From: Macrostomum lignano
Lineage: Eukaryota
NCBI GenBank assembly: GCA_002269645.1
Contig: NIVC01003443.1
Coordinates: 1-64,000, forward strand
DNA: 64,000 nt
Direction of reading: 5' to 3'
The first letter of the stretch is position 1, and the number at the start of each line of letters is the position of its first letter. Both the position numbers and the translations under genes were made by a program. Below the pieces are notes generated by a model, which saw only the letters and a list, made by a program, of their open reading frames with translations, searched no databases and was not told where the DNA came from. Shown piece by piece: positions 3,888 to 57,790 of this stretch.

Positions 3888-4721
3888 TTTTTTGGATTCC
3901 GAGAGATAATTATTTTCTGCAACTTTGCTGTGGTGGCAGCAACCTACTACTAGAAGTAACTTACTTATGCAAATACAAAAAATCTAGAAAACAGTAATTG
4001 TTCTAATCGGATTCTGAGGACTCAGCGCTGAGCAGATTTTTAGTTCTTGTTCCTGTTTCCTATACATGTATACTCGTGGTTATATGTTGCTCGCTGAAAA
4101 ATAAGACCTAATGTTGTAATAGCTCCCTTAAGTGATAAAATTCGTGCTCTCCGATGATCAATTGTATCCTGACCTTTTTGCCCGGCGGGCACTTGATCTA
4201 ACCCGCGTTAATACCATATAGACTACATGTACAGTACATTTAAGCCTGCATGAATGAAAGGAAAGTCAAAACTTGCATTTAATGCCCGCAAAATATAGCT
4301 GATTCAATCTCTTATACTGCGCTGCAACTTGTTTCTAGACTGCAGCGCACGCTGCATGACAATTAGCTTCGATCGTTTTCATCAAAAGTGTATATGCTTA
4401 AAATGTGGGGGCTTCGTGGCCATTCTTTCTCTTGCAGCCTTGCTGAGACAAAAATATTTATGGCACAAAGAAAATAATTACCTATTTGCGGGCGTAAAAT
4501 AAAAGTTATTTCCGTTTATTTATTTCTTTTGGTCTGAAGCAAATTATGCTTCGCCTCGGCTAAGAAACGAGTCTAATACATTTGCTTTAGACCATAGACT
4601 AAAATGAACGGAAATAATATATTTATCCCCCATTTGGCCAAACTAACACTGTACATTTATAACCATAGACAAATGTTGATTTGATGCAGTTCCCGAAAAC
4701 GATTGTGTTTGGTATTTCAAA

Positions 4722-7050
4722 TTGAGTGGTTGTCTACTTAATCTCTTTAATTTTAATCCGCGACACTTTCGCGTTAGTTTCAACATGAGTGATATTGATA
4801 GCGTCGGTTTTGAATCACTTAGTCTTGCTGAAGTCGAAGCAGTCTTGAGTGACTTGCCACTGGCTCCCACAACCGATTGCAACGAAGATAAGCAGAGACT
4901 CAACGAAATGATTGCGTCTGTAGTGCCAGAAGCTACAACGAAGTGTAAGTGGGTGGTAGTGTAGAGATCTCCAAGCCTAATAGCCTACTAGAAGTAGTGA
5001 GATAAAAACATGAATACTATTTAAAAACTACTCTATTTTCAGTAATACATGCAATATCACGTAAACAGCGAGTGATCATTCCATAGTCCAAAAAACGGTT
5101 TTCAAATGTCAATTTAAATGCGACCCAGGCTTCACCCCTTTTCTATGTAAAACCCCACCGGTCAAGAGACAAAGTCCATCCTTTGATTCTTATCAATAAA
5201 ACCGGTTTGAAGCTCAAGGTCGAATGAAATCGTGTATAAATACGAGCGTACAAGCGAAAAGTCCGAGCTGAAACCTCAGACTCGGAGCAGCCTTAATAAA
5301 TCTTGGGCTTAGCCAAAGCTACCAAGCAAGGCTATATCTCTGAGAGGGACAAACACCAATTGGTAAGCCTTGTTAGAGTCTTTGTTATTTGAGTCTTTGT
5401 TATTCGATTATTGAGAGCTGTCATTGCCGGCCGTTACTGATCAGTCGATTTATAGAGTTATTGAATTTGAGGCCTCCCTATTCCTAAGGGATTAGATAGG
5501 ATCTGCGGACCGATTCCGATACTCTTAGTCGATTACTGATTGATTGATTTTGGTACCCTAGAGTAACCGATAGGAGCACACGACTCAGATTCCTTCTTTA
5601 TTTCTAGAAGAAGACGCCCTTTCGGAGGACCTCGTTATTGTTATAGAGTTGACATTGTTATTAGGGCGCATCTCTGCACTCGAGGAATATATCGATTTCT
5701 GCACTCGAGGAATATATTGGTTTCTGCACTCGAGGAATATATTAACGTCGACGGACTAAGTTATTGAGCTCTCATGTTCGGCCGATTCTAGAATTCAAGA
5801 AGACTACTCCGGAGGAGGAAGATTTGAAGAGTCGAGCTCGGAAAACCTGCCCGACAAAGAAGAGGAGCCCGCACCAGTAAGTGAACACTGAACTTGTTCC
5901 CAGGCTTGAGGTCTGGAAGTGGGAGTTCGTGCGTTTAGACACTAGATTAAATTCTCTCTCTCTTCTCTTTCTCTCTCTCTCCCTTTCCCTCTCTCTAGTG
6001 TGATAAAGCGAACTCTTCAGTAGAAATCTTTCGATCGTGGCACGAAAGGAAGAAGAATCAATAAGGTAAGGCAGAACATGGACCGAGTTTGATGGTGTTG
6101 GCCGATCTATCCGTGATGAGCAAGCACGATCGCAACTACGTTCTTAAGTGATTTATCTTAGAGGTACGAAATAAGCATGGTGATCGCTATGGCGCTTCTA
6201 CATTGAATGATTTTTTCAGCATGCTGCAATACTATACTTAGTCAACGAATGCGGAAAGCTATGGAGCCTCTGGAAGGACGTCGAATTCAATGAGAGCCGA
6301 CGTGTGCTGGATGCTTCGATGAAGATGAGTACCCGTGACGGAAAGGGTAGTGGATTGCGTCATGCAGGACCTGTACCATCTAGTATCGAAGAGAAGCTCT
6401 GGTCTGAAGGTGTGCTTGGTAGTGATAGTCCACGACAGCTGGTGAGTTCCGCGGTTTGGGGTGTGGGAAAACATTTCGCACTACGCGGTGGTTCGGAGTT
6501 GCGAGACCTGGAGTACAATCGACAGATCCAGCTAGAAGCGATTGATGATGAGGTCTGTTTAGTCTATAGGGACAACAGCGGATAGAAGACCAACCAGGGT
6601 GGTTTAGACCGCCTTCGACGGGAACAGAAGATCGTCAGAGCCTTCCACATTGAAGATGATTCTAAGTGCATTGTCGGTCTCTACACCGACTACGTTTCGC
6701 ACCGGCCGAGCGGGTGTTGCGAGGCTCTTTTCTTGTCATGCAACAGGCGGTGGAAGCCTGATGGTCGCTCGGAATGGTCTACAAGGATTCCGATTCGACG
6801 GCACACGTTGGCCTCAACTGTAAAGTCGCTTGTGACGAAGGTGGCTCCAAACGACAGCACACGCTACACTAACTAGTCGTTGCACAAAACCTGTGCAACC
6901 GTTTTACGCGATGCTGGTGTACCGCGCGAGGATATTGGACGTATCACGGGCGCAGTTGCTCCGCTCTAGAGCGATACATTGACGCTTCAATGATGCAGCA
7001 GAAGCGCTTCAGCACCATTCTATCCGGTTCTGTCCAGGCGAAGGAAAGCA
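4722..7050 (+). mobile_element. Crypton/DUF3504-like tyrosine recombinase pseudogene (copy A), split by a solo LTR
   Basis: Removing 4960-6019 plus one TSD restores ...PEATTKCKWVVEIFRSW..., then FILEVRNKHGDRY, HFALRGGSELRDL (catalytic Arg), RYTN*SLHKTC, RITG and LERY. In-frame stops. CCATAGAC at 4592 and 4663 just upstream. Confidence 0.85.
4960..6019. mobile_element. Solo LTR (1060 bp), Gypsy-like
   Basis: Starts TGTAGAG, ends CTCTTCA; 4-bp TSD GTAG at 4956-4959 and 6020-6023. Contains 3 copies of CTGCACTCGAGGAATATAT (~5675-5745). Confidence 0.8.
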
Positions 7051-10915: not shown

Positions 10916-11139
10916 TGTGTAGAGAGAGAAGCTGTATATTTCATGTCAAATCAGAATTTAACAAACAAATGAGCAACATATGTGAGTAATTATGTTTACT
11001 TTTGAAATTAAAAAACTTCAACAAAAAAATCCTTTCTAGGTTACAGAGAGATAAGGAAAACTCTCTTATCTCTCTGTTTGTCAATATATTTTGATTCAGC
11101 AAAAGCTTCGGATGCTTCGCGTGCAAGTTACGACGTAGA

Positions 11140-11520
11140 AAGTTTCACAAAGAAGGTGGCGACGTCCAGCAGCAATACGAGCCGAATGAAGAGGGCGACA
11201 TGCTGAAACTGTCTGCCTACTTCCAAGGCGGAACCGCGAACGCTGAACAGGATTGATTTCTGTTCTATCTTCTCTTCAGTCTCGGTGAGCGCGGGCAGGG
11301 ACATTTGAAATATCTGAAGAAACGCGAAATTCTCCAGCTTCACATTGATGCTAATGGTAAAGAACTACTTGTTGCCGAAGCTTTCATCAAAGAACAAACC
11401 GGTTGATCCAGTGATGGCGAAATCACGTGGCGACAACAAGCAGGCCATGAGACCGCCAACGTACGAAGGTATCTGGATCTACTGCCTCAACGAACTAAGG
11501 ACAATCATCTTTTTTTGGCT
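11140..11520 (+). mobile_element. Crypton-like recombinase fragment (copy B)
   Basis: DMLKLSAYF...FLFYLLFSLGERGQGHLKYLKK...DANGK.YLLPKLSSKN; aligns by eye with the ERGQE segments at 34750, 37600 and 39690. Confidence 0.7.
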
Positions 11521-11623
11521 ACTAGCGACGGAAACGTTACGTTCTCCGTGAAACAAAACCACGGTGATAACTACCTAAGTTTAGTAAAAAACTAAGTTTA
11601 GTTTTCACGGGAACGATTTAGTA

Positions 11624-12933
11624 CGAGGGAAAGTAAAAAAGTAATGATAATTTTGTTCTCACGAGTGTCAAACTTAAAATTAGAATCTACTTTTCTACAT
11701 AGTCCCCTTCAAGGGTCAGACACTTCTCCATGCGGTGTCGCCATCTCTCCAGGCCGTTCGCGTAGAACTCAGGAGGCTGTGCAGCAAGCCACTGTACAGT
11801 AGCCTTTTTGGCATGCCTCTTTGTCCTCATGTTGGACTCCTTTGATTGCTTCCTTCAGCTTGGGAACCAAAAAAGTCTTGGGAGACAAATCAGGGCTATA
11901 TGGAGGATGCCGGAGGATTTCCCAGTGGAAATCTCGCAGGGCTTCACGGCAGAGCCGAGAAGTGTGGGCTGGTGCATTGTCGTGGTGAAAGCGAATTCCA
12001 CGGTGCAGCTTTCCGGGTCGCTTTTTGGCCAATTCGGAGTGGAACCTTTGCAGAAGCGACTCATATTAGGTTGCATTGATGGTCTTCTGGCTTTCCAAGA
12101 AGTCCACCATCACCACTCCCTCAACATCCCAGAAGATGGTCGCCAAGACCTTCGCTGCAGACCCTTCCGCACGGAACTTCTTAGGGCCCGCTGAACATCG
12201 TGGCAGCCACTCCTTGGATTGGACCTTGGACACGGGATTGTACTGAAATATTCATGTTTCATCCTCAGTCACTAAGCGCTGGTAAAAGTTTTCTGAATCA
12301 GCGTCCAAGCAGTTCAGCAGGTTGATGGCGCACTCAGTGCGCTGAACCCAGTCTTCAGGCCGCAACAGCCGCGGGACCCAGCGGGCACTCAGCTTGCTCA
12401 GACCAAGACAGTCAATCACAATGGAACGAGCATCGCCATGAGAGATGGCCACTTGGTCAGCAATATTGTCTATGGTCACGCACCGATCCTGCTCAAGTAC
12501 CTGCTGCACAGCTGCCACATTTTCCTCTGTGCGCGATGTTGTGGGCCTTCCCGACCACTGGGCGTCTTCCATGGCCTCTCAGCCTTCCTTAAAAGCCTAA
12601 ATCCAGCAGTAAATGGTTGGATCTGGTGGAGCAGTGTCCATATAGACCTTCTATGCGTCAATGATTTCGGCTGGCTTCCAACCAAGTTTTACAGAAAATT
12701 TCAACTTAGTGCGAGCTTCGATTTTTTAATTTTCCGTTGCTGAAAGGGTATACTGTATTAGAGCGGAAGGGTATTAGAGCGTCACCATGCAGAAATCAAT
12801 CACTCTAGAAGAACCAAAACTCTGTCAAATTAAGAACAAAAGATGCTTTTTTAAACGAAACCAGTTGCATTTCAATACCTCCTATATTTTAGGCGTTACA
12901 ACAAAATTATCATTACTTTTTGACTTCCCCTCG
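11624..12933 (-). mobile_element. Full-length mariner element (1310 bp), transposase inactivated
   Basis: ~34-bp TIRs CGAGGG(A/G)AAGT(A/C)AAAAAGTAATGATAATTTTGTT and TA TSDs (11622-23, 12934-35). Motifs WVPRLL, VTEDET, HHDNAPAH and HPPYSPDLSP in ORFs 12252-12572 and 11769-12032. Confidence 0.95.
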
Positions 12934-13822
12934 TAAATGAGACTCTGAGAGACGCTTTGATTACATTTTTTTGTCAAATATTTTTAAACGTATGTTAAAA
13001 TGTTGTAAAAATACACATAATGACGGGTCATTATCTGAGTGTCATTATCTGGAAGTAATTTACCATAGACGTTTCGGACAATGGTCTTCGGCTCTATGCC
13101 AAATTCCCCATATTGATACTGCGCTATTACTTATCCATAGCGCATATCTTTAGTTGTTGGTGTTTGCTGTTATGTTCTAAAATTCATCCGTTATCCCGAG
13201 TTCAAAACCTCTATCCCGAAGTTTAAGTGAAGAAATAAATTGAATGTGTTTATGGTTTAACCATAGAAAATACGATTACCCGTCCATTATCCCAACGACT
13301 GAAGGGCCACTTCGGGATAATAAAAGGTTGTTCGTAAGTTAGACTTTTTGATAATCGCCCGACTCACAAGTTCTCGCAGAAAATAAAAATTAAAATAAAT
13401 GAATATCCACATTTTCTAATTTCAGTGTATAGCTATGCACATAAAATATAAGAGTACAGCACACAGCCCAGCACAAAATTGAAACAGGCAGGGTGTTGAG
13501 TATGTTAAGAGAAAAGAAGAGAGGAAATATTGACTACATACGAGCGTATGCTATATAGCTTGATATGAAGTACGAGAAATATTTTTCGATCAAGTAGGGC
13601 AAATCTGCCTGTCTCAAAAGCTTAGCCAACGTAACTAGCAGCAAACTCCATCGGATCTCGCGACTCTGTACATCCGAGAAGGGCAAGAATACACCGATCA
13701 CAGCATCTGGTGAGTTTAGTGGGTGGATGAAATTATATTTCACTTTCCCGATGTGTTTTTATGATTGAAAATAATTTGAATTTCCCTGATCTCGTTTCCA
13801 GTTCCGTTCTAGAGTTAGCAGA

Positions 13823-14870
13823 GTGTGCGACCGGGAATCGGAAGGGCATTTAATGAGCGAGATCATGGCTATTGCGGGTCAAAAGTCCGAGAGCACCGTC
13901 TGGCACTCTACCGTCAAGCCCGATGGTACTGCCTACAGTTGTAGCACACTTGTGTGCATAAACAGGCTGCAATGCATCGTTTCCTACTGGAAAATTGAGG
14001 CATGCCGCTCATTGGAAATCCGGATTTTGTTGAGCTGGAGAAGACCTTTAAGGCCGCCGCAGACAGCAACCGAGGTCTGTTGTTGACGGTGAGGTCGGGT
14101 ATCCGGCAATAAGCAGTGAGGAAATGTCTAAGCTGCACGCGTACTTCACCATAGCAGATACGAAGAGGCTCCAGTATGAGGTGTTGTTTCTCATTGTGTT
14201 CCATTTCGGCTTTAGAGGTCGTGAGTGGATCGGATCATTTAAGGAGGACGCTATTGAAGCGACTGCAATGGACATGTTGAATATATCGATTTAGTGAAGA
14301 ATAATGAGAAGAATGTTTCTATCAAGAGTGCTAGCACCAAGAAAATTGGTATCATTTCGGTGAGCGATTAGGCCGTACGCCCCGTTGAGGCATTCACTCT
14401 TTACTTAAAGAAGCTTCCTGTTGACAACCCAAACCTGTTCCCAAGACCGAGGGCCAACTGGACGGGCAGCGACTGGTCCTGCAAAGAGATCCTGGGTAAG
14501 AACACGCTCGCCGGATTTATGAAGGTTATCCCATCAGGAAGCTGGTCTCGGTCGGTCGTGAACCAATCACTGCATTCGTGCGGCTACAATGACTACCCTG
14601 TAGGCTTCAGTGCGGAACAAACTCAGGCCGTCTCGGGGCACAAGAGACTGGAGAACGTGTTCCGCGGTACACCAAACGAGTGACAATGGATCAAAAGCGT
14701 CGACTGTCAACTGTCATAACTTCTGGCTGTCACGGAAGCAGTAGCCGCTAGAAGTGGCAACTCCCGCCAAGCGGATCGTTGTAGAGAATGGGACATCGCA
14801 GCCAAGCGACATGACGGCCAGAGAACCCACCATTGTCCTGGAAAAAACGGGGTAAAGTGTTCTATCTACT
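13823..14870 (+). mobile_element. Crypton-like recombinase (copy D) fused behind a short C-terminal fragment of another copy (C)
   Basis: GHLMSEIMAIAGQKSESTVW (C-terminal type) runs directly into VKPDGTAYSCSTLVC (N-terminal type). Then FHFGFRGREW, LFPRP, LGKNTLAGFM, TNHCIRAAT and SGHKRLENV, with frameshifts. Confidence 0.85.
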
Positions 14871-15563: not shown

Positions 15564-15929
15564 TTTCGATGGGTGGCGAAATTCTTGTCAATGGGTGGTT
15601 GCGCAAGAGTGTCTATGGCGTTGCTGAATTCAACGCATAAGCGCCTACAACCATTATCCTGAATTCTGACCTTCGTCTAGCTCCATTATCGCTCGGAAGT
15701 ATCATAGACAAAATATTTGGTTGAACTTGTATGGCCGTAGGCTGCTTATCATAGTTTTTAGCCATAGACTATGTTTTCGAAGAAGAAAGGCACAGAAGGG
15801 GAGAGAGGATGAATAAAATGAAAGCTCTCAAATAATCCTACTAGCTAAAAAGCATCATGCCAAACCAAGTACATCTGTTTAACTGGGCTAATTTGCCGAT
15901 TAGTTGTCTTTCTGGTTAGAGTCAGCAGG

Positions 15930-16299
15930 GTGTGCGAATTAGAAGCAGCTAGACATTCCATGGCCGACATCATGGCGATAACCGGCCAGAAGTGCGAAAA
16001 GACAGTTCGCCGATATCTCTCAATCAGACGTGACAAGGTGCTAGAGAAGTGCAGCGACGCCGTACGCAAGGTACTGTGACATGGAGAAAATTACTACACT
16101 GGATTTAGGTGGCCATGTTATTACAAGCGTGGGCCCATCAGCCAGTACTACAGATAGCCCAGTAGTCAACACAAGCGTCTGCCCAGTCAACATCCAGAGC
16201 TCAACGGTCCAGGAGGCGGTCAACTTCGCAAACGCTCATCCAAATGGCAAGAACATCTTCGTCATGCAAAACTGCATGTTCAACCAATGCAGTCTGTGA
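15930..16299 (+). mobile_element. Crypton-like recombinase C-terminal fragment (copy E)
   Basis: HSMADIMAITGQKCEKTVRRYL and the tail NIFVMQNCMFNQCSL*, homologous to the tail at 35520-35571. Confidence 0.75.
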
Positions 16300-18373: not shown

Positions 18374-18452
18374 TGACAATGGTAGATTGCATAGTAGGTA
18401 AGAACCTGAAACAATGGCCAAACAACGTCGTACGCAATGTCATTGTCTGTGT

Positions 18453-28755: not shown

Positions 28756-28780
28756 GTCAAAAGGGTACAATAATGACATG

Positions 28781-43930: not shown

Positions 43931-44039
43931 CTATTCATTGTCTATGGCCAAAATCCTTCATCAATAACGCGACTATGCAGTAAATCCCAAGCCGTGCTGT
44001 AAATTCCAACCACCGTGCTGTAAATTCCCGCACGTATTC

Positions 44040-44480: not shown

Positions 44481-47400
44481 GGTACCGAAATTTAGGACTG
44501 AAACTTACATGTTCGCAGGCAAAAATATTTTCCATTGCTGTTGTCACTTAATTAAAATGAATTATAAAGCCCTCTTATCCCTCTTATAGTCCATGCGTGC
44601 GGTAAATTCCAATCTATCTATGTCTATGGCTAAAACCAGAAGAATGCTTTGCGCATAAATCAATGAATCTATCACTAGGTTCCTTCGTGCGTAAATAGTC
44701 TATGGCACTCGTGCGCTAACGCGCAATCTAGTCTAAGTCTAGTCTAGTCTAGTCCCACCATTGAGTCTATGGGAAGCACTCCAAGAAGCGGTGATTTTCA
44801 GTTACGCTCGTAGTTTTCAGTAGTTTGTGCGCATATTTATCAGTAGCTGAAACGAGCATTAAATTACCTTTTTATTTAGCTGTGTCAGCGTCAGACTTAG
44901 GATGCCTTTGCATGACCAGTGTAAGGTTACAATCAGCAGAGTGAGTTCAGATAGAAAGAAATCGTCTATACATTTTTTCTGGGTCAGAAGGCTGTTGGAC
45001 AGCGGTGTATTTTTTAAAGAAAACTAAAAGAAGTTAGCTCAAATGAGCGGATCCACCCCTCTACACAGTTCTGCGGCAGAGCCCCTCACCGGGCTGATCC
45101 GTGTCTAGCCTGCTAAAAATTTTAAGCTGCGTCATTTTATTGCGATTCAATATATTTCTTCGTCCATTACCATAGACTATTGGCGATTAGTTTTCAGCAG
45201 TGTAAGCGAACATTTTTTCGTTAGCTGAATGGGGAGTGGCCTATCTAGTGTAAGATCTATGGCCCAATTAGTAAGGCTATTTTAGTCTGTGTGTGAAAGG
45301 ATGGAGAAAAGTTTTTTATCTATTACTTGTAGATCCCAAAAGCAAGGTCAGAATAAGCTGATTTTGCACAGATCACTTCAGCACCGTTCAGGCTTTCATT
45401 GGATTACTTTGTTACCGAATTATCCCAGGAGTAGTTGACTAAACGTGCATTGTAAAAATTGAAACAAAGTTTGGCAAAGTTGAAGCTCGATCTGTCAATA
45501 TTGATTTCAGATTTTGAGTGCCCGGCCATAGAGTGTCAAAATTGAAGAGGAGTTTGTCAACTTCAAAGTTCTCCTTGTTCAAGATCGAGGGTGTAAAGCA
45601 ATCGTATTTTTAGCTTATTTAGCTCTGGAATTCAGAAATAAAGCTAAATAAACTTTGTTTTTATAGCCTAGTCTACAATTATTTAAATTAGCTAGTAGGT
45701 TGACATAATTAGATAAAGCTAGTATATAACATTTCACATATAACAAAAAATAATAGGACTTCACACTTACCCTGTAAGTTCGTAGCTAAATCCAATTAAC
45801 AAGTTAATTCTTAGTTTTCACTTTCAGCCCCCGATCGCGTGTTGTAAGACCGACTTCTGTCTACTCTATTATATAATTTTCTTTTATCAGCTAGCCTCAA
45901 CCCCAGGCCAAAGTGTTGGATGTAAAAACGATTAATCGATAATTCTCCGTCAGCAGGGGGGTCCAAAACTGTCGGAGCAAGCTTATTGGCTGGGAGGAGG
46001 GCGGCTGCCCCCCTTCTTGACATAGACATAAGACTAGTTCGCCAAACTCCCCACGCCTAGGGGCAACGCACTGTTGTACTCGTAAGCAGCTTGTTTATCA
46101 ATTATCAGACTAAATAGGCCATAGACAGCCTGCGTGGGCCGGGTTTAGTTACTCTTAAACCACTTTAAAGCTCACTTTCAGGGAGGTTTTTGACATAGAT
46201 TTTATTTTGCGGGATTTAATCGATCACTTTCCCGGACATATTGCAAGGATTATTGTATGTATCTAAATAAGCGTGCTTCTCTCTTCTCTTCCTTCGTGAC
46301 TCGAGAAATTTCTTATTGAAATTTTGTCTATAATAAGAATGTGGGGCTTCGCCCCCACACCCCCATCCCCAACTTCAACCATAGACATACAAGTATGGCT
46401 CCAGGATTTATCTGAATACATCCCGCAAAATTAAAGTAGTTTAAATAAGATATTCTATGGGTTTGAGGTCGGTATGTGATTAAATCCCGAGAGCCGAATA
46501 TCTTATATGTACAGAACAGCAACGTTTAAATCTGGTGATGTTAGAGATAGGAGAAATGATAGGCGAGGAAATTAATAAAAGTGAAAAAAAGAAGACGAGA
46601 GGGGAGGGGAGGAGAGGAGAGAAAAGAGAAGAAAGAGAAGATGAGAGAGAATAAAGCTGAGAAAAGACACAAACCTTGAGCAGGCCAGATTGTCATTGTA
46701 AAATTTCAAAGGACCCGAGAGCTGGATAAGTCAGTGTGGCCGACTTTAGCCGACTCCTGCAGGGGATGTCAATTTTTCTATGTTAATTTTATTGGCTCTG
46801 CTAAAATAAAAAGTCCAAATTAAGTTAATTAAATTACAAATGTTTGTAAATAGACTGCAGTAATAACCTCAGCTAAATCCGATATTACCTTTATTTAGTA
46901 GATACTGGTAATATTCGACTAGCACCTTGGGAAGCAAGCTCACGCAGACCATTAGTATATTAGTAAACTATTAGTGTACAAGCGAGGCAGAGTGAAACAT
47001 TAGTAGGTTGTTTAGTAGGTACTCGTAAGCCGAGTTGAATTATGGTTAAAAGAAGCTTCAACACACTTTTGTAGCCATTATATTTCACACATGCCCTCGT
47101 ACATATTTTACACTAATGCAAAAGATAAGTAAGGTAGATAGATAATAAACGTGGGAAAGCACAAGCAGTCACGTGATGAAATAATTAAGTTTGAGGAGCA
47201 ATCTGTAGAATACGTGTGAAGTGTAGCTCGTATATACAATTGGCAGTTGTTCATTGAAGAGTGCACCTATTTGCTTATAGTGAGTTATCAGCCTATTATC
47301 AGCCTAGATAGTAAGTCAAGTTTCACATAAGTAGTGATAACGCGCATGAACGTACTAATTCACTGATCAGATACAAGAAAATCAGCACACTGTCGAAAGG

Positions 47401-47844: not shown

Positions 47845-48358
47845 TTAAAAATCAGATTTTCGTTTTCCGCCCGAAGCAGGCGAACACTTCACTCCCACAC
47901 GGTTCATTGCGTATCGATAAGGCGAATGCTGCAACAGGTGGAACTCGCGTCCCGGATGCGCCAGCATGTGATGCCGGAACACGTGACGCCTAAGGCCGTA
48001 TAACCGGCCGCACAGGGTGCACTTGTGCCCTGGGATGCTTAGGTGATGACGGACAATGTGACCGCGAATCAGGCCGGCCGAAGTGGCCGTGAGACTGCAG
48101 AGACTGCATCTGTAGGTATCCTCGGCACTTGCACCATCGACTGCCGAGGCGACGACTTTTATTACGTGGTGACTCTCGGGTATTGGAGGTCTGTCTCGGG
48201 TCGGTTTCATCTCGACTGGCTCTCCGTCGCTGTCACATTCTGGCTGTTCGGCAGCTTCAGCGCACGCAGGCGTCGGTGACTTCCCCAGAGTCGAACAGCC
48301 CTGTCGCTGTTTCCGATCAGGCTTAGACGATTCGTCCAATAGGAAACCAGAGCTGCGA
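47845..48358 (-). CDS. C2H2 zinc-finger gene, probable last coding exon
   Basis: YRCSLC..HIVRHH and HKCTLC..HMLAH; acceptor CCTTCAG at 48359-60; phase 2 matches the previous exon. Confidence 0.8.
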
Positions 48359-48499
48359 CTGAAGGTGGGCGGAACAAATGTCAGTAAACTTGATATAATT
48401 TCATCTCCACTGTTTCAGAAATAACCAAATCACTGGGCTTACTACTTTGAGTAGCTTCTTAATACTGAATTCTGGGCTTTAAAAAGCCTATTTTCTAAT

Positions 48500-48720
48500 G
48501 CATCGTCCTATCTGCTACATCATGTTTAATCATGTCTATCTGTTACATCATGTCATTGATAATCATGTCTATCTGCTACATCATGTCTAATCATGTCTAT
48601 CTGTTACATCATGTCTAATCATGTCTATCTGTTACATCATGTCATTGATAATCATGTCTATCTGCTACATCATGTCTAATCATGTCTATCTGTTACATCA
48701 TGTCATTGATAATCATGTGT
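48500..48720. repeat. Tandem repeat CATGTCTATCTG(C/T)TACATCATGT(CTAAT/CATTGATAAT), ~7 copies
   Basis: Direct reading. Confidence 0.9.
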
Positions 48721-48889
48721 CTTGCTGGGATCTTGTCTGCTACAGGGATAACCTATATACATGTAAATCAGTCTATGTCTATGCCAGCTCACGTATACCT
48801 ACGAGTAATAATAATAATAGTTGATTACACCTGCCCTAATGGACAGATGTGCAACCGACAGCTCAGCCGCAGCTATTGCGCGGCGCATC

Positions 48890-49112
48890 TGAAGGCTGCG
48901 TACGGCTGTTCAGTCCAAGGACTGGGGGGTCGCCACACACACCCTCAATTACCCCAGCTAATGCTGTCACCTCGCGGCCATTTTACAGCTGGGTGAGCTG
49001 GAGCAATGCAGAGTTAAATGTCTTGCTCAAGGACACAACTTGTTCCGAGTGAGTCAAGAATCGAACCCCCGACCTTCAACTCGTGAGTCCGACGCTCTCA
49101 CTACTAGGCGAC
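48890..49112 (-). mobile_element. tRNA-derived SINE with a CORE/Meta-like domain
   Basis: Minus strand has a tRNA-like head (B box GGTTCGATTCT), then GTGTCCTTGAGCAAGACATTTAACTCT. Confidence 0.75.
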
Positions 49113-49250
49113 AACCCCACGACTAAAACATACGCTAAAACCTACCGACCCAAGGCTAAAACCTACGAGTAGCAAGAATAGAGCGTGAAGCTAATCTCTT
49201 ATAGGAAGCGCTAAAATCCTCTGTTAACTTAATTCGATGCGTCTTGTCAC

Positions 49251-49582
49251 CTATTATTATTGGCAGTCTGTCTGCCAGTCTTTCTTCGAGTAGCTGAAGT
49301 GGTGCCCTTCCACTTCAGCCTCGCCAGATGTAGCAGCAGTTGATCCGGCAATAATCGGTTGTCGTCTCTACTTAACCTGCTCGCGTGCATGCAAGTCGTC
49401 TTGTAGCGGTCAGGCACCTTGGCATGGACTCCCAGGATGTGCTTGCGAATGTCGCCCATGCCGTGCGGACTGATGGCCGAGCAGCCGGAGCAGCGGAATG
49501 CTCGCCGATTGGAATGCCGCGTCACCGCCACTTTGTAAGTGCTATAGTAGTCCATTTTGGTGCGCAGGACAGCCAGGGTATT
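49251..49582 (-). CDS. C2H2 zinc-finger gene, internal exon
   Basis: TTCCAG acceptor and GTGACA donor; FRCSGC...IRKHILGVH; phases 0 to 2 are consistent. Confidence 0.8.
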
Positions 49583-49856
49583 CTGGAATTCGTAGAATTG
49601 CTAACCATATGCAAAACAGTTGAAGCAAATCTCATTCAACAAAAGCCATTTTTTAATTTCGGCTTTCAAATTGATTTCTCTTAAATTCAAATTTCTGCGA
49701 TAGACAGGTGTAGCCTCGCCAGGCAATCTGGTCGTTGAAGCTACATCTCACTTTGTCAAAGTTAAATCTCACTTTTTCAAAGCCACATCTCAATTGTTCT
49801 AATAAATTGACAAAGCTAAATCTCAGACCTGCTCAAAAGCTACCGGTAAACCTTAC

Positions 49857-50798
49857 CTGGTCACAAATTCCATTCATCAAAGTCTGCAGTGCACTCCAAG
49901 AATACGGCAAATCAATGACTCGCTCAAGCTCGCTCTCAGTCAGAGACATCAGTCTAGACAGTCGCTGCTCCTCAGTGGCCTCTTCGTGCGGCTGAATGGG
50001 CAGCTGCGGAAGCGGCACCACTGATGCCGGAGATGCCGGACTGTACAGCAGCGAAGGAAACTCGGCGCCGCTGTCTTCGCCATCGAAGCTCCTCAAAATG
50101 GCAGCGACTCTGCCAGGCCGTTCAGTTGCCAGCCGGAGCAGCATTTGGTCTGGGTAGAGCCGCCAGTTATTCTCCCTGGAGATTCTGCTGGCCTGACAGC
50201 AGACCGTCAGCAAGTCGTGCCCGATGCGGGCGTGCACGCCCATCACGTGACGCCTAGCGTCGGCCAGAGTGCTCGGTCGGACGGTTGCATTCGGACGTCG
50301 GATGGTGTGGAACACGCGGCCGCACTGGCATTTGTACGCCACCGTCCGTCCGCGGCGCATCTGCCGGACAAGACGGTAGTCGGAGTAGGCTCGCATCTTT
50401 CGCATGAGCTCGGCCCGCTGCTCAGGCTCGCTGCACTGATCTTTGAGCAGCAGAACCAGCGCAGACTCTGAGAATGGCAAGCTGATCTCCTCTTCCTCGT
50501 CGACACCTTCCGCTGCTTCGAAGTGGCTGGCGTTCTGACCGAAGTGCAGCTGGCTGGTTGGCGCGCTGTTGAGCTGCCGAATCTGCTGCTGGCTGCCGAT
50601 GCCGGTTCGAGAAGTTTTGTGCGCTACGCTCGCGTCCGCTCTGCCGCTGCTCGGTCGCTTCTGAGGCTCACGCAATATTTGAGACAGAGCGGAGCAGGCC
50701 GGCTTCGAGTGGCTCCGCAGAACTTTTGGCACCTTAACCGACTCGTCGATAGGAGTCACGACCCGACTGCTGGTCACTTCTTCGTGGATGCGAATGGC
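49857..50798 (-). CDS. C2H2 zinc-finger gene, internal exon (942 bp)
   Basis: ATTCAG acceptor, GTAAGG donor, phase 0-0; YKCQC...ARRHVMGVH. Confidence 0.85.
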
Positions 50799-52290
50799 CT
50801 GAATATTTTTATTGACAACAATATTTAAACCACGCTCTTTTTTTAAAGACGCAATCGAAAACGTTGAGGATCTGGTAGGATGGAAGACCAACTGAGGCAT
50901 CTTTACGAAACCAACGTGTCACGAGCAACAAATTCAGGGCTGGGGTATACAAAAACCTCGGGAAAATTACCCGGAAATCATTCGTTAATTTAAACACAGT
51001 CCCTACAGGGCGCATTGCATGCAAGCCGCAGACCCAACGAAGCTTTTCGGAGATTTGTGAAACGAAACACACCGTGCTGCATGGTCCAGGCCCTGTGGAG
51101 CGGCCGGGGCAAGCGGCAGTCAACCACTTGTTCGTCTTGGCCTGCCTTGTTTCATTTCTACTAAGCGCAGCACGAGCCATAGGCGGCATTGACGGGTAGG
51201 CCCTAGCGGTCCTGGCGAACTGATAAAGCAATATCGCCCCCCGCCCCGGCCGCGCTGCACTGCAGAGAGGCATAGTAGCCAGGCGTTGAGCTGCATGAAA
51301 GCCATACAGTCAAAGCCGAACGGATTTGTTTGTCCATGGGGCAGCTGTTCCTTCGTTCAGCACTGATTCAGAGACGCGCACGCAGCGAAGAAGGCGTGGG
51401 GGGTTGGCTACAGCCCCTTAGCCCTGGGGGTCTCTTCTCCACAGGGCTAGTTTGTCACGTCGAGACGGGCGACTTTGTGATTTCCTGATATTTCTGCTTT
51501 TACCCGGCGGTACCGCCGGCCGCTACGCCACCCCTGATACCCCCCACCACCACCGAAATTAGTGAAGCTTCTGCGCAGGGGAGGATCGCGAACGCTTCGA
51601 AATCTCGCACCAAGGTCTGTTTAGGTTCGCTCGTTGAAATTGGAGTGAATTGAGTGCTATATGCGCACCTAATTTGCTACCTTGTGTGCGTGTGGAGACA
51701 AGAGGTATTGGCTGCCAGCCACCACAACAAAATCCGCAACACACAGGTTTGAGTCGGGACTGTTTCTAAATGTTCCATTGCATCCATATACTCGAATTGT
51801 TTTATTCCCAGTGGAAAATGCGATGACGGATGTGCAGATTCCCTTATGCTAGCTTGATTATCAGAAGAGGAAGTGCAGATTCCCTTATGCTTTTCGAGTC
51901 CAGCTACGAGCGCTCTGTGAGAGGAGCTTCAGAAGCCCTTTCAAATGTATTAATTCTCAAAATGGACTACTCAGCCTAAGAATGCAGCTTCTGTTCTAAT
52001 CTAGGTAATTATTACTGCATAACAGGGGAGGATACAGGGGGACAGGGACTTCGATTGTTTTCGTTTGTTTCTGGTCTCTGCTGATTATATTCCGTCAGCT
52101 ATTGCAGTTCATAGGCTTTGCAATGGCAAACAGGTATGCATGCCTCGGGGCTTGATCGATCAGGATTGCCTTTCAAAGCCCCTTACGAACAGTCAAAGAT
52201 TTCTTCTTGTTGTTTGTTGTCTTTTCGTTGCTTTTCCGTTTTTATTATCGAACTCGCAAAATTCAGGTTTCCATCTTCTGTGCTCTGAAA

Positions 52291-52563
52291 TCCCCACGAA
52301 TTAGAATCTGAAATCCCCGCCCATTAGAATCCGAAATCCCCGCCAATTGGACTCTGAAATCCCTGCCAATTAGACTGTGAAATCCCTGCCAGTTAGACTC
52401 TGAAATGCCTGCCAATTAGACTCTGAAATCCCTGTCAATTAGAATCCGGAATCCCCGCCAATTAGAATCCAGAATCCCCGCCAATTAGAAACTGAAATCC
52501 CCGCCAATTAGAATTCGGAATCCCCGCCAATTAGAATCCGGAATCCCCGCCAATTAGAATCCG
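52291..52563. repeat. Minisatellite, 23-bp unit TTAGAATCCGAAATCCCCGCCAA, ~12 copies
   Basis: Direct reading. Confidence 0.95.
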
Positions 52564-53087
52564 AAGCCTCAGTAATGAGAATCAGAAATGAAAAAGCATA
52601 TCGTTAGCTGTCCAGCTTGTTAACCTAAAAGCTTAACAAACATCCAGCAACTACAAAACCACAGTGCAACGCACCCATAAGTCAAAGCAGAAACGAGAAA
52701 GGCAGGTAGTGAGGGCCAAGCAACAGCTCAGAAAGATGAGATCTGTGTATAGACCTATGCTACGGAAGCAGGCGAGGACTATAAAGCCAGAGGGTCCGAG
52801 CGACTGGGAGTGTCACCGACCGTGTGTGTGACAGGAAATCAGAGAGACCGGGCTCGCTTGTTGGTACGCACGCCAGGGGGGGGGGAGGGGCGATCCAGCT
52901 GTACCCGCCTGACTGCCTCACCCACCCGAGAGCCGACTGCAGGCTTGTATCGTCGAGGTGAGAGAGAGAGACAGGCAGACCGACGGAGAATCAGAATTAA
53001 GAGCGCGAGGGGTTGCTTGGGCTGTTGGGTTGTGAATAGGCCAGGGGTCACAGCTTGAGAGCCCGGCCAACCTGCTATTGACTACTG

Positions 53088-53722
53088 AGTCAGTCAGTCA
53101 GTCAGTCAGTCAGTCAGTCAGTCAGTCAGTCACCCACTCACTCAAGTCAGTCAGTCAGTCAGTCAGTCAGTCAGTCAGTCAGTCAGTCAGTCAGTCACCC
53201 ACTCACTCAAGTCAGTCAGTCAGTCAGTCACCCACTCACTCAAGTCAGTCAGTCAGTCAGTCAGTCAGTCAGTCAGTCAGTCAGTCAGTCAGTCAGTCAG
53301 TCAGTCAGTCAGTCAGTCACCCACTCACTCAAGTCAGTCAGTCAGTCAGTCAGTCAGTCAGTCAGTCAGTCAGTCAGTCAGTCAGTCAGTCAGTCAGTCA
53401 GTCAGTCAGTCAGTCAGTCAGTCAGTCAGTCAGTCAGTCAGTCAGTCAGTCAGTCAGTCAGTCAGTCAGTCAGTCAGTCAGTCAGTCAGTCAGTCAGTCA
53501 GTCAGTCAGTCAGTCAGTCAGTCAGTCAGTCAGTCAGTCAGTCAGTCAGTCAGTCAGTCAGTCAGTCAGTCAGTCAGTCAGTCAGTCAGTCAGTCAGTCA
53601 GTCAGTCAGTCAGTCAGTCAGTCAGTCAGTCAGTCAGTCAGTCAGTCAGTCAGTCAGTCAGTCAGTCAGTCAGTCAGTCAGTCAGTCAGTCAGTCAGTCA
53701 GTCAGTCAGTCAGTCAGTCAGA
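53088..53722. repeat. (AGTC)n microsatellite, ~630 bp, with four CCCACTCACTCA interruptions
   Basis: Direct reading. Confidence 0.98.
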
Positions 53723-53727
53723 CTCAC

Positions 53728-54378
53728 CCCACTCAGGGGATGCTCAGAAACAATATGCTCATCAATTCTGGCGGCGTCAGTGGACGCCAAGCCGCACTCT
53801 GAGCAGTGGTTCAGCCCGAATCTTAGACAGCCTTCCTCGCCGTCCTTGCCGCTGCATTCAGCCTGATGACTGACAAAGGCCTTCCAGCTCATCGCGCAGA
53901 ACTGGCAGTTTGGACAGGTGAGCGATGAAGCGCCCGAGTGGCGGTTGGCGCTGACTAATAAGCCGCTGGCGAAGCTGTCCGCATCGCTGTGGCATCGGTC
54001 GACATGCTGCTGAACAGCCAGCTGGGAGGGACTCTTTACTAGGCAGCCGGGCACTCGGCAGTGGTGCAGCAGCCCAGATGAAGCCGACGAGTCAGTTGAG
54101 AAATGTCCAACTAGATGTGCTGCTATGTCGGAGAGCGCTAGGTCAGCGAAACAGTAGGGGCAGGGCATTGGCACCGCCTCCGGGCCTTCGCTGTGGTGCT
54201 GCGATTTCAAGTGCTGGATGAGTTGATCCGGCTGCCAGGCGGAGAAGGCCAAGCAGTGTCCGCAGACGAAGCAGCCGCTAGCGGATTCGAGAGCGCAGAC
54301 TGTGTTGAAAAGGCGGGTCTGACGTTCCTGCTGCGAGAACAAGATGGCGCGGTGGCGCCTTAGTTTGGCTATGAGGAC
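53728..54378 (-). CDS. C2H2 zinc-finger gene, internal exon (651 bp, ~5 fingers)
   Basis: TTGCAG acceptor, GTGAGT donor, phase 0-0; repeated CxxC..H..H motifs. Confidence 0.85.
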
Positions 54379-57189
54379 CTGCAATTAGGATAAGAATGTT
54401 GCATAGCGCAGATTTTATTAAAGACAAATAAACTTTCACAAATTAAAAAAATGCACGTCATTTTCTTGTCACATCAAAAAACACATTGTATACACATGCT
54501 GCAGTACAGAATAATCTAGCTAAAATGTTTCAAAATTCTTAGTGTGTAAAAATATTTTTAGCTGATCACATACTACAATTTATATAGTCCTATATAACAA
54601 AAGTCTTATAAATAATAATATATTATAAACACAGATAAATATGAATATTGCTTTCTCACAAGCAAAAATTTAATTAATTTAGTGGTATGTAAAACTTAAT
54701 AACTTAATATAAAATATTTTAAGCACAATTAAAAAGCTTAAAAAAACATCTAAAATTTTAGAAGACAACTGTAAAGTAAAACTGATTTAAAAATCAAATA
54801 ATTTAAAAAACTAATAATATGTTGTAAAAAGACTTACAATAGCTGATAATGTATCGACTTGTTTGGTTTGAGAAGAAGTGCAGTTTAATTCACTTAAACC
54901 TTTAATAGTCTGGTAATTCATGTTTGTAGAAAATAGCAAACCAGATACAACTACGAACTAATATTAAAGTAGCACTAGCTATCTATAAGCCAGATTTCTC
55001 ATAGCTGAAACAGCGTATTAAAACGGTTCCACCGAAGCATGCTCAAATCTGCGCAAGCTTTATTTCCACAACAATATTAACAAATATACACGAGCTTTAT
55101 GTATAAAATAAATCCCACCATTAAATATTGTTACCCAGAAGATTATCTTAAGCTATTGTGTTTATGCCCTCTTAACTGAGCAATAAAAAGTAGTTAGGCG
55201 TTATTTTAATATTATATAGTTCTTTCCGCCCAGCTTACCATTTTCAGGAAGTTACTTTTACACTTAATAGAGATGAGAATATTAATAAAAACCCTAATTA
55301 GAATGTTCGTTTTTTCTAGCATGCTTTTCTTTGCTCCATTGAATTTTTAAAAGCCTTGCTGGCAAAGTAAGAAATCCGATCGTGTTATAAAATGCGAATT
55401 AACAGAGCCGTCAACATGCAGACTCCGTCAAACTGATTTATGTGTACAGTACTTTTTGGTTACTATATTCGAATTCGTTGATATTTTCCAGCAATCCATT
55501 TAGTTAACTGTTGGGATTTGTATTATATGGCATGTAGTATTCGTTATGATTACTTTCCAAATAATTACTTGACTTTTTCGTTCCAAAATAAAAAAAATAT
55601 ATTATAAATTTTGTAACTATAATAATTTGTTAGAATGTTATTCCTTTGCATGTAAATACTGTTGAAACATGGTAGAACCCTCTGTAATTGGATATTAAAA
55701 ATATTTGTTCGTTGGACTCAATTGGAGTGATACGCGTTGCTATGCCACTGCCGCTGTGAGTTAGCATCGCAAATTCGTCCTATAGCTCCTGTATTTCTAA
55801 AGTGCGGCCATCCCCGTTTTTTTCTCGTGTTTTGATCAAAAACATTTAAAGTGCATTTATCGCGTGCTTCTTCTTCAGAATATATATTTGCATCGCACGT
55901 CACACACTATCCATTTTAATGTGACGTGCGATCACCACTAGCTATTGCTCAACATTTTTCCAATATTCATTCTTAATCTATCTCACCGTAATAAAATCAA
56001 CCGAACTATTAATACAAAGTTCAGAGCATTAGCCATTCAAATCTCTGTCTGTCTCTGCCTATTTTCTCATTTGCCATGAACCGTGGCATGAATTAAGTGT
56101 GAAATAGAGAGTGCGCCTGTCGCAGGGAATGGATAGAAGCTGAGGACCCTCGTACACCGAGTATGAGGCGAATCCAACCTAATAATCATAGCACCATGAG
56201 CTCTCTCTGGGACCTGCACTTCCCCATCCGAGCCCATCTAGGAGGAATTGTAGCCTAAGGCCTAGCATCACCAACCAACTAAAGATCCCCCTATTCAAAA
56301 GTCCTCGTTTCCAGCACTGACTAGACTGTCCCTTGTATGCCTCGCATAGAGTCCCTTAATCGGCCATTTCTAGCACAGTTGTTGGGGTCAAGAACCTTAT
56401 AGTCTGCTACAGACCGGGATTCCCGTCTCGATTCCCGTGGGATTTTAATTTCACCGGGTGTACTCCTGCACAGGTGACTGCATGGTGGCGGCCACGCGCC
56501 TTTGGCATGTTACTTCAAACAACCCGGGCTCGCGCTGTCTAGATAAATGGGATCTTGGCCGCAACGTCATCTACCACACCATCCAGAGGCGGACAAAAAG
56601 TCTAGGGGACGAGGTCTGGCGGCTGTAACTTTCAGCGCCAGAGCTCAGGGGTTTGCAGAGGTATTCTCAGCATGCAACCCAGCAGGTTACGTCAAAAAAA
56701 GTAATTTTGAACTTTGAAAACATTCAGAATATTAATGATTAGTTTTATTAAACTTTTCTACTAAGACTACTGCGGACTTTCCTTCCGCAGTAGTATTCAG
56801 GGTGTATATGTCTTAGTTTTGTTTATTTATTTGTCTCATTTGGATAACTTTTAATTTTCTTGAAAATAAGTGAAAAACTTGCAGCATGAGTTGACCGTTC
56901 ATGGGGTTGCAAAAGAAATCAAAAGTTGTTAGTTAGTTCTGAGCTTTTTTTAGCCACCCGAGAGATACTGTCTGTGGTAAATCCTTCACTTCACGCTGTG
57001 CCAACTGCATTGCAGCTTTGCCTTAATGGCCATAGACTGTCAATTGCCACAGACAGCCAGCGACATTCTTTTTCTATAGTTTATATCTTATCTGCAAAGT
57101 TTAATTCGTTCAAGAATAAAATAGTCTATGGTAAAAACCCAAACTCTAGCTTCCCTTTTCAACCCCTACTAGACTGGCATTAAACTATA

Positions 57190-57790
57190 CTGTCCGTCAA
57201 AAGTTCCGGAACCCTTGCTACGATGTCTTCTAGCGGACATAATTTCAGTCCGTTTCAATTGTAACTTAATTCAAATGAAAGCTGCGGATCTCAGCTCCAT
57301 GATGTGGTCAAGAAAAAGTTTATTCGAAGGAGCGCGTGTGAACAGGCCAGTGTTATGTACATAAAGGTTAGAGAAAAAAAGTGAGGAAAAGACAGACAAG
57401 CAATTGTTTTTTACTCTTTTACTCTCCCATGAAAGCCGACTGCACAAGAATCCATAAGAGCCTGTTGATTTCAACACAAGTTTTGGCCATAGACTAATGT
57501 TAGCCAGGCTGAACACTGCGCGCAAACCGATTCCTTCCCATGTGTGTTTGCTCCATAGACTCAGCAACCATAGACAATTGCTTGTTTGTCTTTTCCTCAC
57601 TTTTTTCTCTAACCTTTATGTACATAACACTGGCCTGTTCACACGCGCTCCTTCGAATAAACTTTTTCTTGACCACATCATGGAGCTGAGATCCGCAGCT
57701 TTCATTTGAATTAAGTTACAATTGAAACGGACTGAAATTATGTCCGCTAGAAGACATCGTAGCAAGGGTTCCGGAACTTTTGACGGACAG
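57190..57790. mobile_element. Tc1/mariner-type foldback MITE (601 bp, ~220-bp arms)
   Basis: Termini CTGTCCGTCAAAAGTTCCGGAAC, TA TSDs (57188-89, 57791-92). The loop carries CCATAGAC at 57487, 57553 and 57568. Confidence 0.9.

Follow-up and report, generated by a model that had tools for sequence, protein, structure and literature searches.

Background

Cryptons are, to our knowledge, the least understood class of eukaryotic DNA transposons, and neither their circular intermediate nor their site-specific recombination has ever been shown biochemically. Vertebrate genes such as ZMYM2-4 and QRICH1 descend from animal Cryptons. The subject of this work is a nest of Crypton-type elements, together with an 8-bp motif that accompanies them, CCATAGAC (GTCTATGG on the other strand), in the free-living flatworm Macrostomum lignano. 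The window, as we call the whole 64-kb stretch of DNA that was analysed, was identified by exact-protein look-up as positions 1-64000 of contig NIVC01003443.1 in assembly GCA_002269645.1, the Mlig_3_7 assembly of this species (PMC5730564); exact look-ups of ORFs from the window yielded nothing further.

Short constant direct repeats at the element ends are regarded as a signature of Cryptons (Goodwin 2003; Kojima & Jurka 2011, PMC3212892). For animal Cryptons, Kojima & Jurka found no terminal repeats (PMC3212892), and the ends of fungal Cryptons of the DUF3504 type were described as variable (Glomhopper 2026, PMC13465315), while the CryptonS elements of oomycetes and diatoms have TATGG termini (PMC3212892).

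Nested in the window are Crypton-type DNA transposons whose sole gene encodes a DUF3504 tyrosine recombinase (YR). The elements carry a tyrosine recombinase, have no reverse transcriptase (RT) or long terminal repeats (LTRs), and end in direct repeats of 4-6 bp that match the target; they are Cryptons, of the CryptonA subgroup through DUF3504. With CryptonA/DUF3504 elements they share the single DUF3504 plus tyrosine-recombinase gene, the lack of RT and LTRs, the 5-6 bp repeats common to element and target, and the clustering of copies, many of them truncated or intron-bearing, in repeat-rich compartments. Unlike those elements, the M. lignano copies have precise ends, with CAATG repeats and termini inverted at 16/21 positions, and a 16-bp motif that is repeated within elements and common to families only 28-42% identical. 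CryptonS elements are similar in their constant terminal direct repeats of 5-6 bp, and TATGG itself resembles CAATGG and the end of GTCTATGG, perhaps by coincidence; however, they have another recombinase group and another host kingdom, and no dispersed internal 8-mer has been reported for them. The plant transposons Ac (AAACGG) and En/Spm (12 bp) likewise have a short word repeated many times, in either orientation, no more than a few hundred bp from their ends, and their non-autonomous derivatives keep these repeats, but they are DDE transposons with terminal inverted repeats (TIRs) as well as target-site duplications (TSDs), whereas the M. lignano enzyme is a tyrosine recombinase. Compared with published animal Cryptons, the precise ends, the short inverted termini and the multi-copy word common to families are new, though some of these families may already be in Repbase or Dfam. 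From the evidence set out below, the motif is probably a cis-element of these Cryptons, either a recombinase-binding arm or an accessory site.

Recombinases and sampled loci

Searches by tblastn with retrieved homologs detected nine recombinase remnants (i.e. at least nine) between 6.2 and 39.8 kb of the window. One of them matched DUF3504 in Pfam at 6211-6873 (E=1.7e-16, 61.1 bits); the window copies are decayed, and their Phage_integrase match is weak (6.6e-5). A recombinase stitched from the window found M. lignano proteins annotated as "Tyr recombinase domain-containing" as well as remoter DUF3504 and Phage_integrase proteins. The 506-aa recombinase P0150 matched both DUF3504 (39.3 bits) and Phage_integrase (33.2 bits against a cut-off of 27.1) above the Pfam cut-offs, and the catalytic set R…HxxR…H/W…Y could be recognized by eye as RGRE…HCVR…GHK…ERY. 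Matches in the PDB were weak (QRICH1, Tn1549 Int and XerA). A preliminary description of this DNA had taken the recombinase genes for Crypton-type YRs, and these domain matches bear it out.

Eight further M. lignano loci were reached via proteins. L002 surrounds a 41%-identical recombinase gene; L009, L010 and L011 are paralogous or allelic versions of window 9-41 kb; and L012-L015 surround copies of a young recombinase family. The recombinases of the motif-bearing families are mutually just 28-42% identical in amino acid sequence, so the 8-mer would be read either by a conserved part of the recombinase or by a host factor. Unlike the 8-mer, which occupies non-coding terminal and subterminal stretches of the elements in several families, the 12-mer ATTCCTGCACG is private to one.

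Ends of the young element family

The annotated recombinase gene of L009 falls in a 90% cluster of which no fewer than 12 members, spread over different contigs, are annotated in M. lignano; the full-length protein, P0150 (BOX15_Mlig013821/005367), has 506 aa. All-vs-all alignment defined a 1970-bp unit that is 97.5-99.6% identical in L012/13, L014, L015, L009 and L011 and is set in unrelated flanks. It carries nothing but a 1597-bp recombinase gene, with no reverse transcriptase, LTRs or split direct repeats. The right end of every young copy reads …GGTCAAACGA-CAATG/flank, where the slash marks the element boundary, and the left end of the short form reads flank/CAATG-TCTTTTGA-CCATAGAC-AAAGTCATTCCTGCACGG. 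All right ends have CAATG, and in L012 and L014 so do the left ends; a long form of 2082 bp starts directly behind CAATG in L014 and, in L015, behind CACTG. The young element is bounded by a constant 5-bp CAATG direct repeat.

Two copies of the motif, both on the gene strand, occupy fixed places within the unit. The left one is 8 nt inside the left CAATG, at 99 nt upstream of the ATG; the second, which every copy has, is found past the stop codon at 61 nt inside the right CAATG (CCATAGAC-61 nt-CAATG/flank). The preliminary description had proposed to compare the motif with element boundaries defined by multi-copy alignment: the boundary is CAATG, and the motif lies 8 nt or 61 nt inside it.

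Over their last 21 nt the two ends are mutually inverted at 16/21 positions (P~8e-5), and there are no long TIRs, a structure that fits a recombinase core site rather than the TIR of a DDE-type element. When the ends of this family are joined as they would be in a circle, the sequence is CTGTGGTCAAACGA-CAATG-TCTTTTGACCATAG, with arms identical at 12/14 positions around a 5-bp centre; the right arm is the extended motif described below and the left arm its degenerate inverted copy CCACAGCG. The arrangement recalls loxP, FRT and dif in that the predicted junction has two inverted arms of 14-16 nt around a short asymmetric centre, and the extra copies of the arm word nearby recall the arm sites of phage lambda attP and the third FRT repeat. 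It differs from loxP, FRT and dif in its imperfect arms (12/14 to 16/21) and its centre of 5 rather than 6-8 bp; and it differs from these sites and from lambda attP in that the extra copy is 61 nt away in direct orientation. That the motif is a recombinase arm, as had been suggested, is thus supported for the left end of the one family whose ends could be defined, where an arm lies beside the crossover, but the motif is not itself the attachment or crossover site. A perfect palindrome, TCTATGG-ATTTTG-CCATAGA, with 7-nt arms and a 6-nt spacer, was seen at L009 ~14808-14836 and the equivalent position of L011, immediately left of the young Crypton; in no other case were two motif arms seen at core-site spacing.

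The targets of the young family could be read from its flanks. In L012 the left flank of the young copy is a diverged version of the element's own right end, with the same 12-mers, the motif, 59 nt and CGA-CAATG: the young copy sits head-to-tail exactly at the terminal CAATG of an older resident copy. Resident ends can therefore serve as targets, which provides a simple explanation for the nests. In L014 and L015, a bare CAATG in A-rich DNA was also used.

These ends also bear on the possibility that the motif is a subterminal transposase-binding repeat of P-like/THAP, hAT-like or Harbinger-like elements, with the Crypton link a matter of co-location. The nest does contain THAP open reading frames (ORFs) along with a P-like element whose TIRs are 121 bp long, an 8-bp repeat flanks one motif-bearing insertion, and the clusters at 40-46 kb and 57 kb are without recombinase coding. 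However, the motif occurs inside the 1970-bp Crypton unit, which holds only the recombinase gene; the TIRs of the P-like element contain not the motif but just its one-mismatch variant TTCTATGG; the transposon with a TAAA TSD has the motif in one copy only, through a point change; and the 8-bp repeat contains CAATGG, the Crypton junction word. We consider this explanation highly improbable.

Sequence and distribution of the motif

The window contains 45 exact matches to the motif, 22 on the plus and 23 on the minus strand, spanning 4592-57575. In dinucleotide-preserving shuffles of the window the 8-mer occurred 1.18 times on average and at most four times, and all 24 of its single-mismatch variants occur 0-6 times each in the window, which is the background level. 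The preliminary description had counted more than 40 copies (tally ~44); all of those it listed are present, and a few had been missed. Oriented flanks gave a 16-bp consensus, TTTTRR-CCATAGAC-AA. Among 46 unique contexts, positions -6 to -4 are T in 59-70%, position -1 is A or G in 40 and position -2 likewise mostly purine; A or T stands at +1, where C never occurs, and 27 contexts have A at +2. The extension to TTTT(A/G)(G) noted earlier is therefore real in per-column counts, and beyond -6 to +9 no column of these contexts departs from background, bar one marginal column.

Outside the 16-bp context most copies have unrelated flanks, and duplications internal to the window account for just ~8 of them, which rules out a single multi-copy transposon as the source. 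Neighbouring copies are co-oriented in 20/44 pairs, as expected for random orientation. Ends of miniature inverted-repeat transposable elements were rejected as a source when an inverted-repeat scan of the window put no motif at TIRs. Window-wide k-mer enrichment gave no strong co-occurring second motif, no RNA families (Rfam) or tRNAs were found, the motif belonging to none of them, a literature search for the 8-mer CCATAGAC and for 12-mers returned no relevant match, and the Crypton papers describe no such motif.

Within the window no copy falls in the 6.1 kb of recombinase-homologous coding intervals, and there are none in the host-gene regions at 19.3-25.6, 46.4-57.0 and 57.6-64 kb, in agreement with the earlier remark that host-gene exons lack the motif. 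Motif density was determined over 150 kb from five mutually non-homologous loci, binned by distance to recombinase coding remnants. It was 0/kb inside recombinase coding, 2.19/kb at 1-500 bp from a coding remnant, 0.75/kb at 0.5-1 kb, 0.50/kb at both 1-2 kb and 2-5 kb, and 0.17/kb beyond 5 kb, with 0.03/kb predicted from base composition; a gradient was also obtained when seven loci were used. L012 and L015 have no motif in 16.4 kb each at more than 2 kb from the element (33 kb together), and in L002 all six motifs are intergenic around the recombinase gene while two host genes have none. The absence from these 33 kb and the density gradient indicate that the motif is not a genome-wide feature; equal enrichment away from YR genes, the outcome the preliminary description had named as contrary to its proposal, was not seen over the sampled loci. 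Its claim that the motif concentrates at recombinases stands on the multi-locus gradient but not on a cluster test confined to the window, which was not significant. Clusters without nearby recombinase coding, at 40.3-46.4 kb, at 57.0-57.6 kb and in parts of L014, may be non-autonomous derivatives. Homologous recombinases on short contigs of other sources (L003-L007, which may be transcripts) come with no motif in 10.7 kb, so the word is not universal to the recombinase family but belongs to this genome or genus.

A genome-wide host signal unrelated to transposable elements (TEs), such as an insulator, a Ruby-like small-RNA promoter or a trans-splicing signal, would suit a sharp 8-mer that occurs on both strands and is absent from exons. 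Against it are the empty 33 kb of L012 and L015 and the motif-free host-gene parts of the window and L002. A Ruby-type promoter of the kind known from nematode 21U-RNAs was ruled out, there being no fixed-distance downstream signal near the motif, and a spliced leader or trans-splice acceptor was ruled out because the M. lignano spliced-leader and YTNCAG acceptor sequences (taken from PMC8629364) are without the motif. Nor are orthologous copies conserved above their flanks. A host signal of this kind is barely credible.

Orthologous copies diverge by ordinary point changes (CCATGGAC, GTCTATGA, CCATAAAC, CCGTAGAC, GTCTTTAG), and 15/21 are intact where 17.5 would be expected from flank identity, which argues that there is no host-level purifying selection on single copies. 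The paralogous copies are 93-99.6% identical, and the scarcity of one-mismatch variants fits young copies and also selection acting only at transposition. After insertion, motif copies would drift neutrally, and their sharpness would come from youth and transposition-level selection rather than from a host function. In the TAAA-TSD transposon, which is not a Crypton, the motif (25602) arose by one substitution; it is probably fortuitous, since the L012 copy of that element reads GACTATGG.

Filled and empty sites

Kilobase-scale insertions in the window were compared with the paralogous loci in eight filled/empty pairs. The 8292-bp insertion at 27518-35809, which holds two recombinase copies, has the empty site …TTCGG-CAATGG-ATAAAT… in L009/L011 and the filled site CAATGG/TAGAT……GTGA/CAATGT, with no TIRs. 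A 1043-bp recombinase-bearing element of L011 is flanked by AACAATGG, and the terminus CAATGGTAGAT recurs as an element end beside differing flanks. The segment at 35871-40240 is flanked by GTAGA, and L009/L011 carry a different 4.8-kb recombinase-bearing segment at that place. The sequence common to both junctions was CAATG(G) or GTAGA and never the motif, which was found at the empty-site junction in 0/8 comparisons.

Variant junctions nevertheless lie close to motifs. The median distance from junction to motif was 76 bp, as against 422 bp for random positions in the same motif-rich regions, and 14/30 junctions are within 65 bp of a motif where 4.0 would be expected (P<5e-5); nine distances fall within 52-62 bp. 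Both big insertions have one motif outside one junction and another, in equal orientation, inside the other, at 52/59 nt in the first and 55/58 nt in the second. Recombination between two sites that have the motif at an equal distance from the crossover would give exactly this pattern.

These comparisons are most damaging to the idea, a strong form of what the preliminary description put forward, that the 8-mer is itself the attachment or crossover site, at existing copies of which elements or cargo integrate to build an integron-like cassette array. The unrelated flanks of most copies would suit it, as would the piling up of elements, with two haplotypes having different recombinase-bearing segments at one position, and the young copy integrated at a resident element's end. 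Yet what the junctions share is CAATG(G) or GTAGA, the motif is missing from all eight empty junctions, and just 3/30 junctions are within 20 bp of a motif (1.6 expected, not significant). The likeness to integrons (attI/attC) lies in a tyrosine recombinase and a short conserved word between unrelated segments; the differences are that there is no single resident integrase, at least nine recombinase remnants being present, that orientation is not uniform (20/44) and that insertions do not occur at the conserved word. Each unit comes with a recombinase of its own and is an autonomous or decayed transposon, so that the array is a transposon nest. Integration at existing sites therefore survives in the sense that a young copy entered an older terminal site, but in none of the comparisons did it take place at the motif. 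The landing-pad proposal is thus borne out only in part; with no motif at the empty junctions, its strong form fails, and the attachment-site explanation, largely refuted, is very unlikely.

Proposed mechanism

The reading we favour, and judge somewhat probable from the sequence features above, takes the extended motif as the word that the recombinases of M. lignano Cryptons bind, serving as an arm at the CAATG crossover and, elsewhere, as accessory sites. Circles would integrate at CAATG(G), in many cases at, or close to, the motif-bearing ends of resident elements. The element would excise as a circle, in line with what has been proposed for Cryptons, and the circle would join its ends as arm-CAATG-arm, a core like those of lox, FRT and dif, with the predicted junction …GGTCAAACGA-CAATG-TCTTTTGACCATAGAC…. 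The recombinase would bind the motif and exchange strands in or beside CAATG, with extra motif copies acting as accessory binding sites. Integration would follow at CAATG(G) (target consensus ~AAACAATGGAAA; candidate target sequence AAACAATGGAAAAC), often at, or ~55-60 bp from, motif-bearing resident ends, and repeated integration there would pile elements into nests.

Several points weigh against this proposal. We infer binding, recombination and the circle from DNA letters only, and the core-site picture comes from a single family. The CAATG centre, at 5 bp, is below the usual 6-8 bp spacer, and the long form starts CAATG/TAATATTCC, with no motif adjoining CAATG. CA(A/T)TG is missing within 12 nt of about 90% of the motif copies; in 84 unique contexts CA(A/T)TG lies within 12 nt downstream in seven, compared with 2.9 expected (P=0.03), and upstream there is no enrichment. 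The proposal does not account for the junction-motif spacing of 52-62 bp, and at X1-type ends the motif points to the crossover, not away from it. The seven sampled loci were reached via window genes or recombinase genes and are not a random sample of the genome, and in the window alone the 22 motif clusters were not significantly close to recombinase remnants (P=0.09 and 0.40). Finally, the left motif lies 64-107 nt upstream of the recombinase ORF in three families, which fits a promoter equally well.

According to that promoter explanation, the main alternative, the motif would be a transcription-factor or core-promoter site driving the recombinase gene, with enhancer-like copies elsewhere and no role in recombination. 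The gene-strand motif precedes the ORF by 99 nt in the young family, 107 nt in L002 and 64/98 nt in copy-C, and a host factor would explain why the 8-mer is common to families 28-42% identical. A promoter does not account for the second motif, which in every copy lies beyond the stop codon and 61 nt from the right end, nor for the inclusion of the motif in the inverted termini or the clustering of structural-variant junctions near motifs. Both orientations occur, as do clusters without any ORF, and the motif bears no relation to downstream ATGs or ORFs and has no fixed-distance downstream signal; a start-of-gene signal was ruled out, with no excess of ATGs or ORFs near it. We therefore regard a pure promoter role as unlikely.

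The recombinase-binding proposal has a bolder extension, which we put forward tentatively and with more doubt than confidence. One 16-bp word may be a common arm for several deeply diverged Crypton families of one genome, and circles, from the same family or from others, would dock preferentially at resident ends; the nests would then be self-extending landing pads, a metazoan counterpart of att-site arrays.

Other features of the window

The features of the window are collected in Table 1. In the copy-C-type element at 27512-31770 two motifs are paired at +177/+211 (27689, 27723) and a further one (31710, minus strand) is 53 nt from the right homology end; the uninterrupted element at 39265-40171 has motifs at 39318+, 39936- and 39970-. 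In the 3.4-kb insertion the motif 28030- is placed 9 nt inside the left end. The motif at 44765 is followed by CAATGG, and in the foldback at 57185-57795 the inner end of the right arm lies inside the motif at 57568.

Table 1. Features of the window (a point in the strand column marks features given no strand; motif positions are followed by their strand)
Coordinates	Strand	Feature	Basis
4592-4670	+	Motif cluster, two copies (4592+, 4663+)	Exact matches
6193-6951	+	Crypton recombinase remnant, DUF3504 type	Pfam E=1.7e-16; tblastn
11125-11580	+	Recombinase remnant	tblastn with YR homologs
12468-12475	-	Motif inside mariner ORF remnant, conserved in L009/L010	Exact match, locus comparison
13063-13084	+	Motif, then N8-CAATGG; 79% homolog of the end of the L011 1043-bp element	
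13811-14644	+	Recombinase remnant with annotated 56-aa gene at 14124-14294	tblastn
15611-15769	.	Motif pair (15611-, 15762+)	Exact matches
15915-16076	+	Recombinase C-terminal remnant (…AITGQKCEKTVRRYL…)	tblastn
16381-17334	-	Two motifs (16381-, 17327-) in a 946-bp tandem duplication, absent in L011	
17649-17656	+	Motif; L011 ortholog is CCATGGAC	Locus comparison
18377-18609	+	Terminus CAATGGTAGAT; motif at +189 (18566); CCGTAGAC at +225 (CCATAGAC in L011); copy-C-type layout	
19276-19283	-	Motif; GTCTATGA at three paralogous loci	Locus comparison
25602-25609	-	Motif in non-Crypton TE (25161-27149, TSD TAAA); L012 copy is GACTATGG	
27368-27465	.	Convergent motifs (27368+, 27458-) in target DNA common to L009/L011; 27458 is 52 nt left of the 8.3-kb junction	
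27512-31770	+	Copy-C-type non-autonomous Crypton, start CAATGG/TAGAT, interrupted by the 28021-31391 insertion	
27518-35809	+	8292-bp insertion absent from L009/L011	Filled/empty comparison
28021-31391	.	3.4-kb insertion in recombinase ORF, holds THAP/P-like element; motifs 28030-, 28652+, 28741+	
32109-32116	+	Motif copy	Exact match
33552-33559	-	Motif copy	Exact match
34000-35559	+	Recombinase copy A, with a frameshift or split by an intron; 42% aa identity to P0002	
35743-35933	-	Two motifs: 35743, 59 nt inside right end of 8.3-kb insertion; 35926, 55 nt inside left end of next variable segment	
35871-40240	.	4370-bp segment flanked by GTAGA	Comparison with L009/L011
36880-38290	+	Recombinase copy B, weak Phage_integrase; best relative M. 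lignano Tyr recombinase P0002, 41%	
38843-39264	.	Palindrome, 153-nt arms, 88%, one motif per arm (38938+, 39162-)	
39265-40171	-	Uninterrupted copy-C-type element; recombinase fragment 39384-39825; terminus CAATGGTAGAT at 40171	
40299-40306	-	Motif 58 nt outside right junction of 4.4-kb segment; L009/L011 read GTCTTTAG	
41852-42248	.	Motif cluster (41852+, 41889-, 42241-), no recombinase coding nearby	
43940-46386	.	Seven motifs (43940-, 44622-, 44698-, 44765-, 45170+, 46119+, 46379+), no recombinase coding	
57030-57131	.	Convergent motif pair (57030+, 57124-); 57124 is 53 nt outside the foldback	
57185-57795	.	Foldback, 223-bp arms 99% identical; 166-bp loop with three motifs (57487+, 57553+, 57568+)	

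Other TEs of the region are a long interspersed nuclear element fragment, a mariner remnant, the THAP/P-like element and the 2-kb element with a TAAA duplication. The P-like element (28896-31392) has a THAP finger ORF and 121-bp TIRs that are 97-99% identical; together with 875 bp more it is inserted in a Crypton recombinase ORF. The TAAA-TSD transposon, 1989 bp long with TGATGRG termini, is present at 25161-27149 and at L012 18141-20134, that is, absent from L009/L011 with a 93% identical copy on another contig. L011 lacks a 690-bp insertion, at ~17688-18376, which has inverted termini of (C)TGTGACG plus a TGA duplication and directly adjoins the Crypton terminus CAATGGTAGAT. The mariner transposase remnant (11772-12578, minus strand; Transposase_1, DDE_3), in which the motif copy at 12468 falls, has closest database relatives that are 73% identical, and none of the database matches was a mariner relative on a long M. 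lignano contig. Inverted repeats of 20 nt (85%) at 33943-33962 and 35606-35625 exactly bracket recombinase copy A, with no motif inside.

The 328-aa gene at window 22305-23291 equals 10001-10987 of L009, L010 and L011, and is thus found on four contigs at 90% identity or more (paralogs were recovered through cluster look-up), so the region is duplicated or has been retained as haplotypes in the assembly. It had no Pfam match and no homologs outside M. lignano, the homology search matching only the gene itself. On the minus strand at 47845-54384 are paralogous ORFs with a …RHxxGVHAxxxxxxxxxCxxASRxSRxxNxxLxPDQxLLxLA… block and weak C2H2/Di19 zinc-finger matches, which may be a lineage-specific host gene family. 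Among these zinc-finger-like host ORFs (47.8-54.4 kb) sits an (AGTC)n microsatellite at 53088-53721, with ~157 units, 96% purity and a long VSQS repeat ORF. Five minisatellites with units of 20-46 bp lie at 44062-44476, 52284-52565, 59373-59829, 60550-60862 (15.6 units, 98% identity) and 61421-61997. In L014, a minisatellite at 20854-21597 has at least 15 units of 50 bp, each with TTTGGCCATAGACTAA, within the range of a DEAD/TUDOR-domain gene.

Implications

The M. lignano elements comprise a young, apparently intact multi-copy family in a flatworm capable of transgenesis, with CAATG ends, TTTTRRCCATAGAC as the word that the recombinase may bind, and a junction predicted for the circle. Exact ends, word and junction together make the Crypton mechanism testable and would explain how nests accumulate. 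The 8-mer provides a cheap annotation marker for Crypton-derived DNA in M. lignano, non-coding derivatives included. If the reading as a common arm and landing pad is true, the motif would be the first defined cis-site for animal Crypton transposition.

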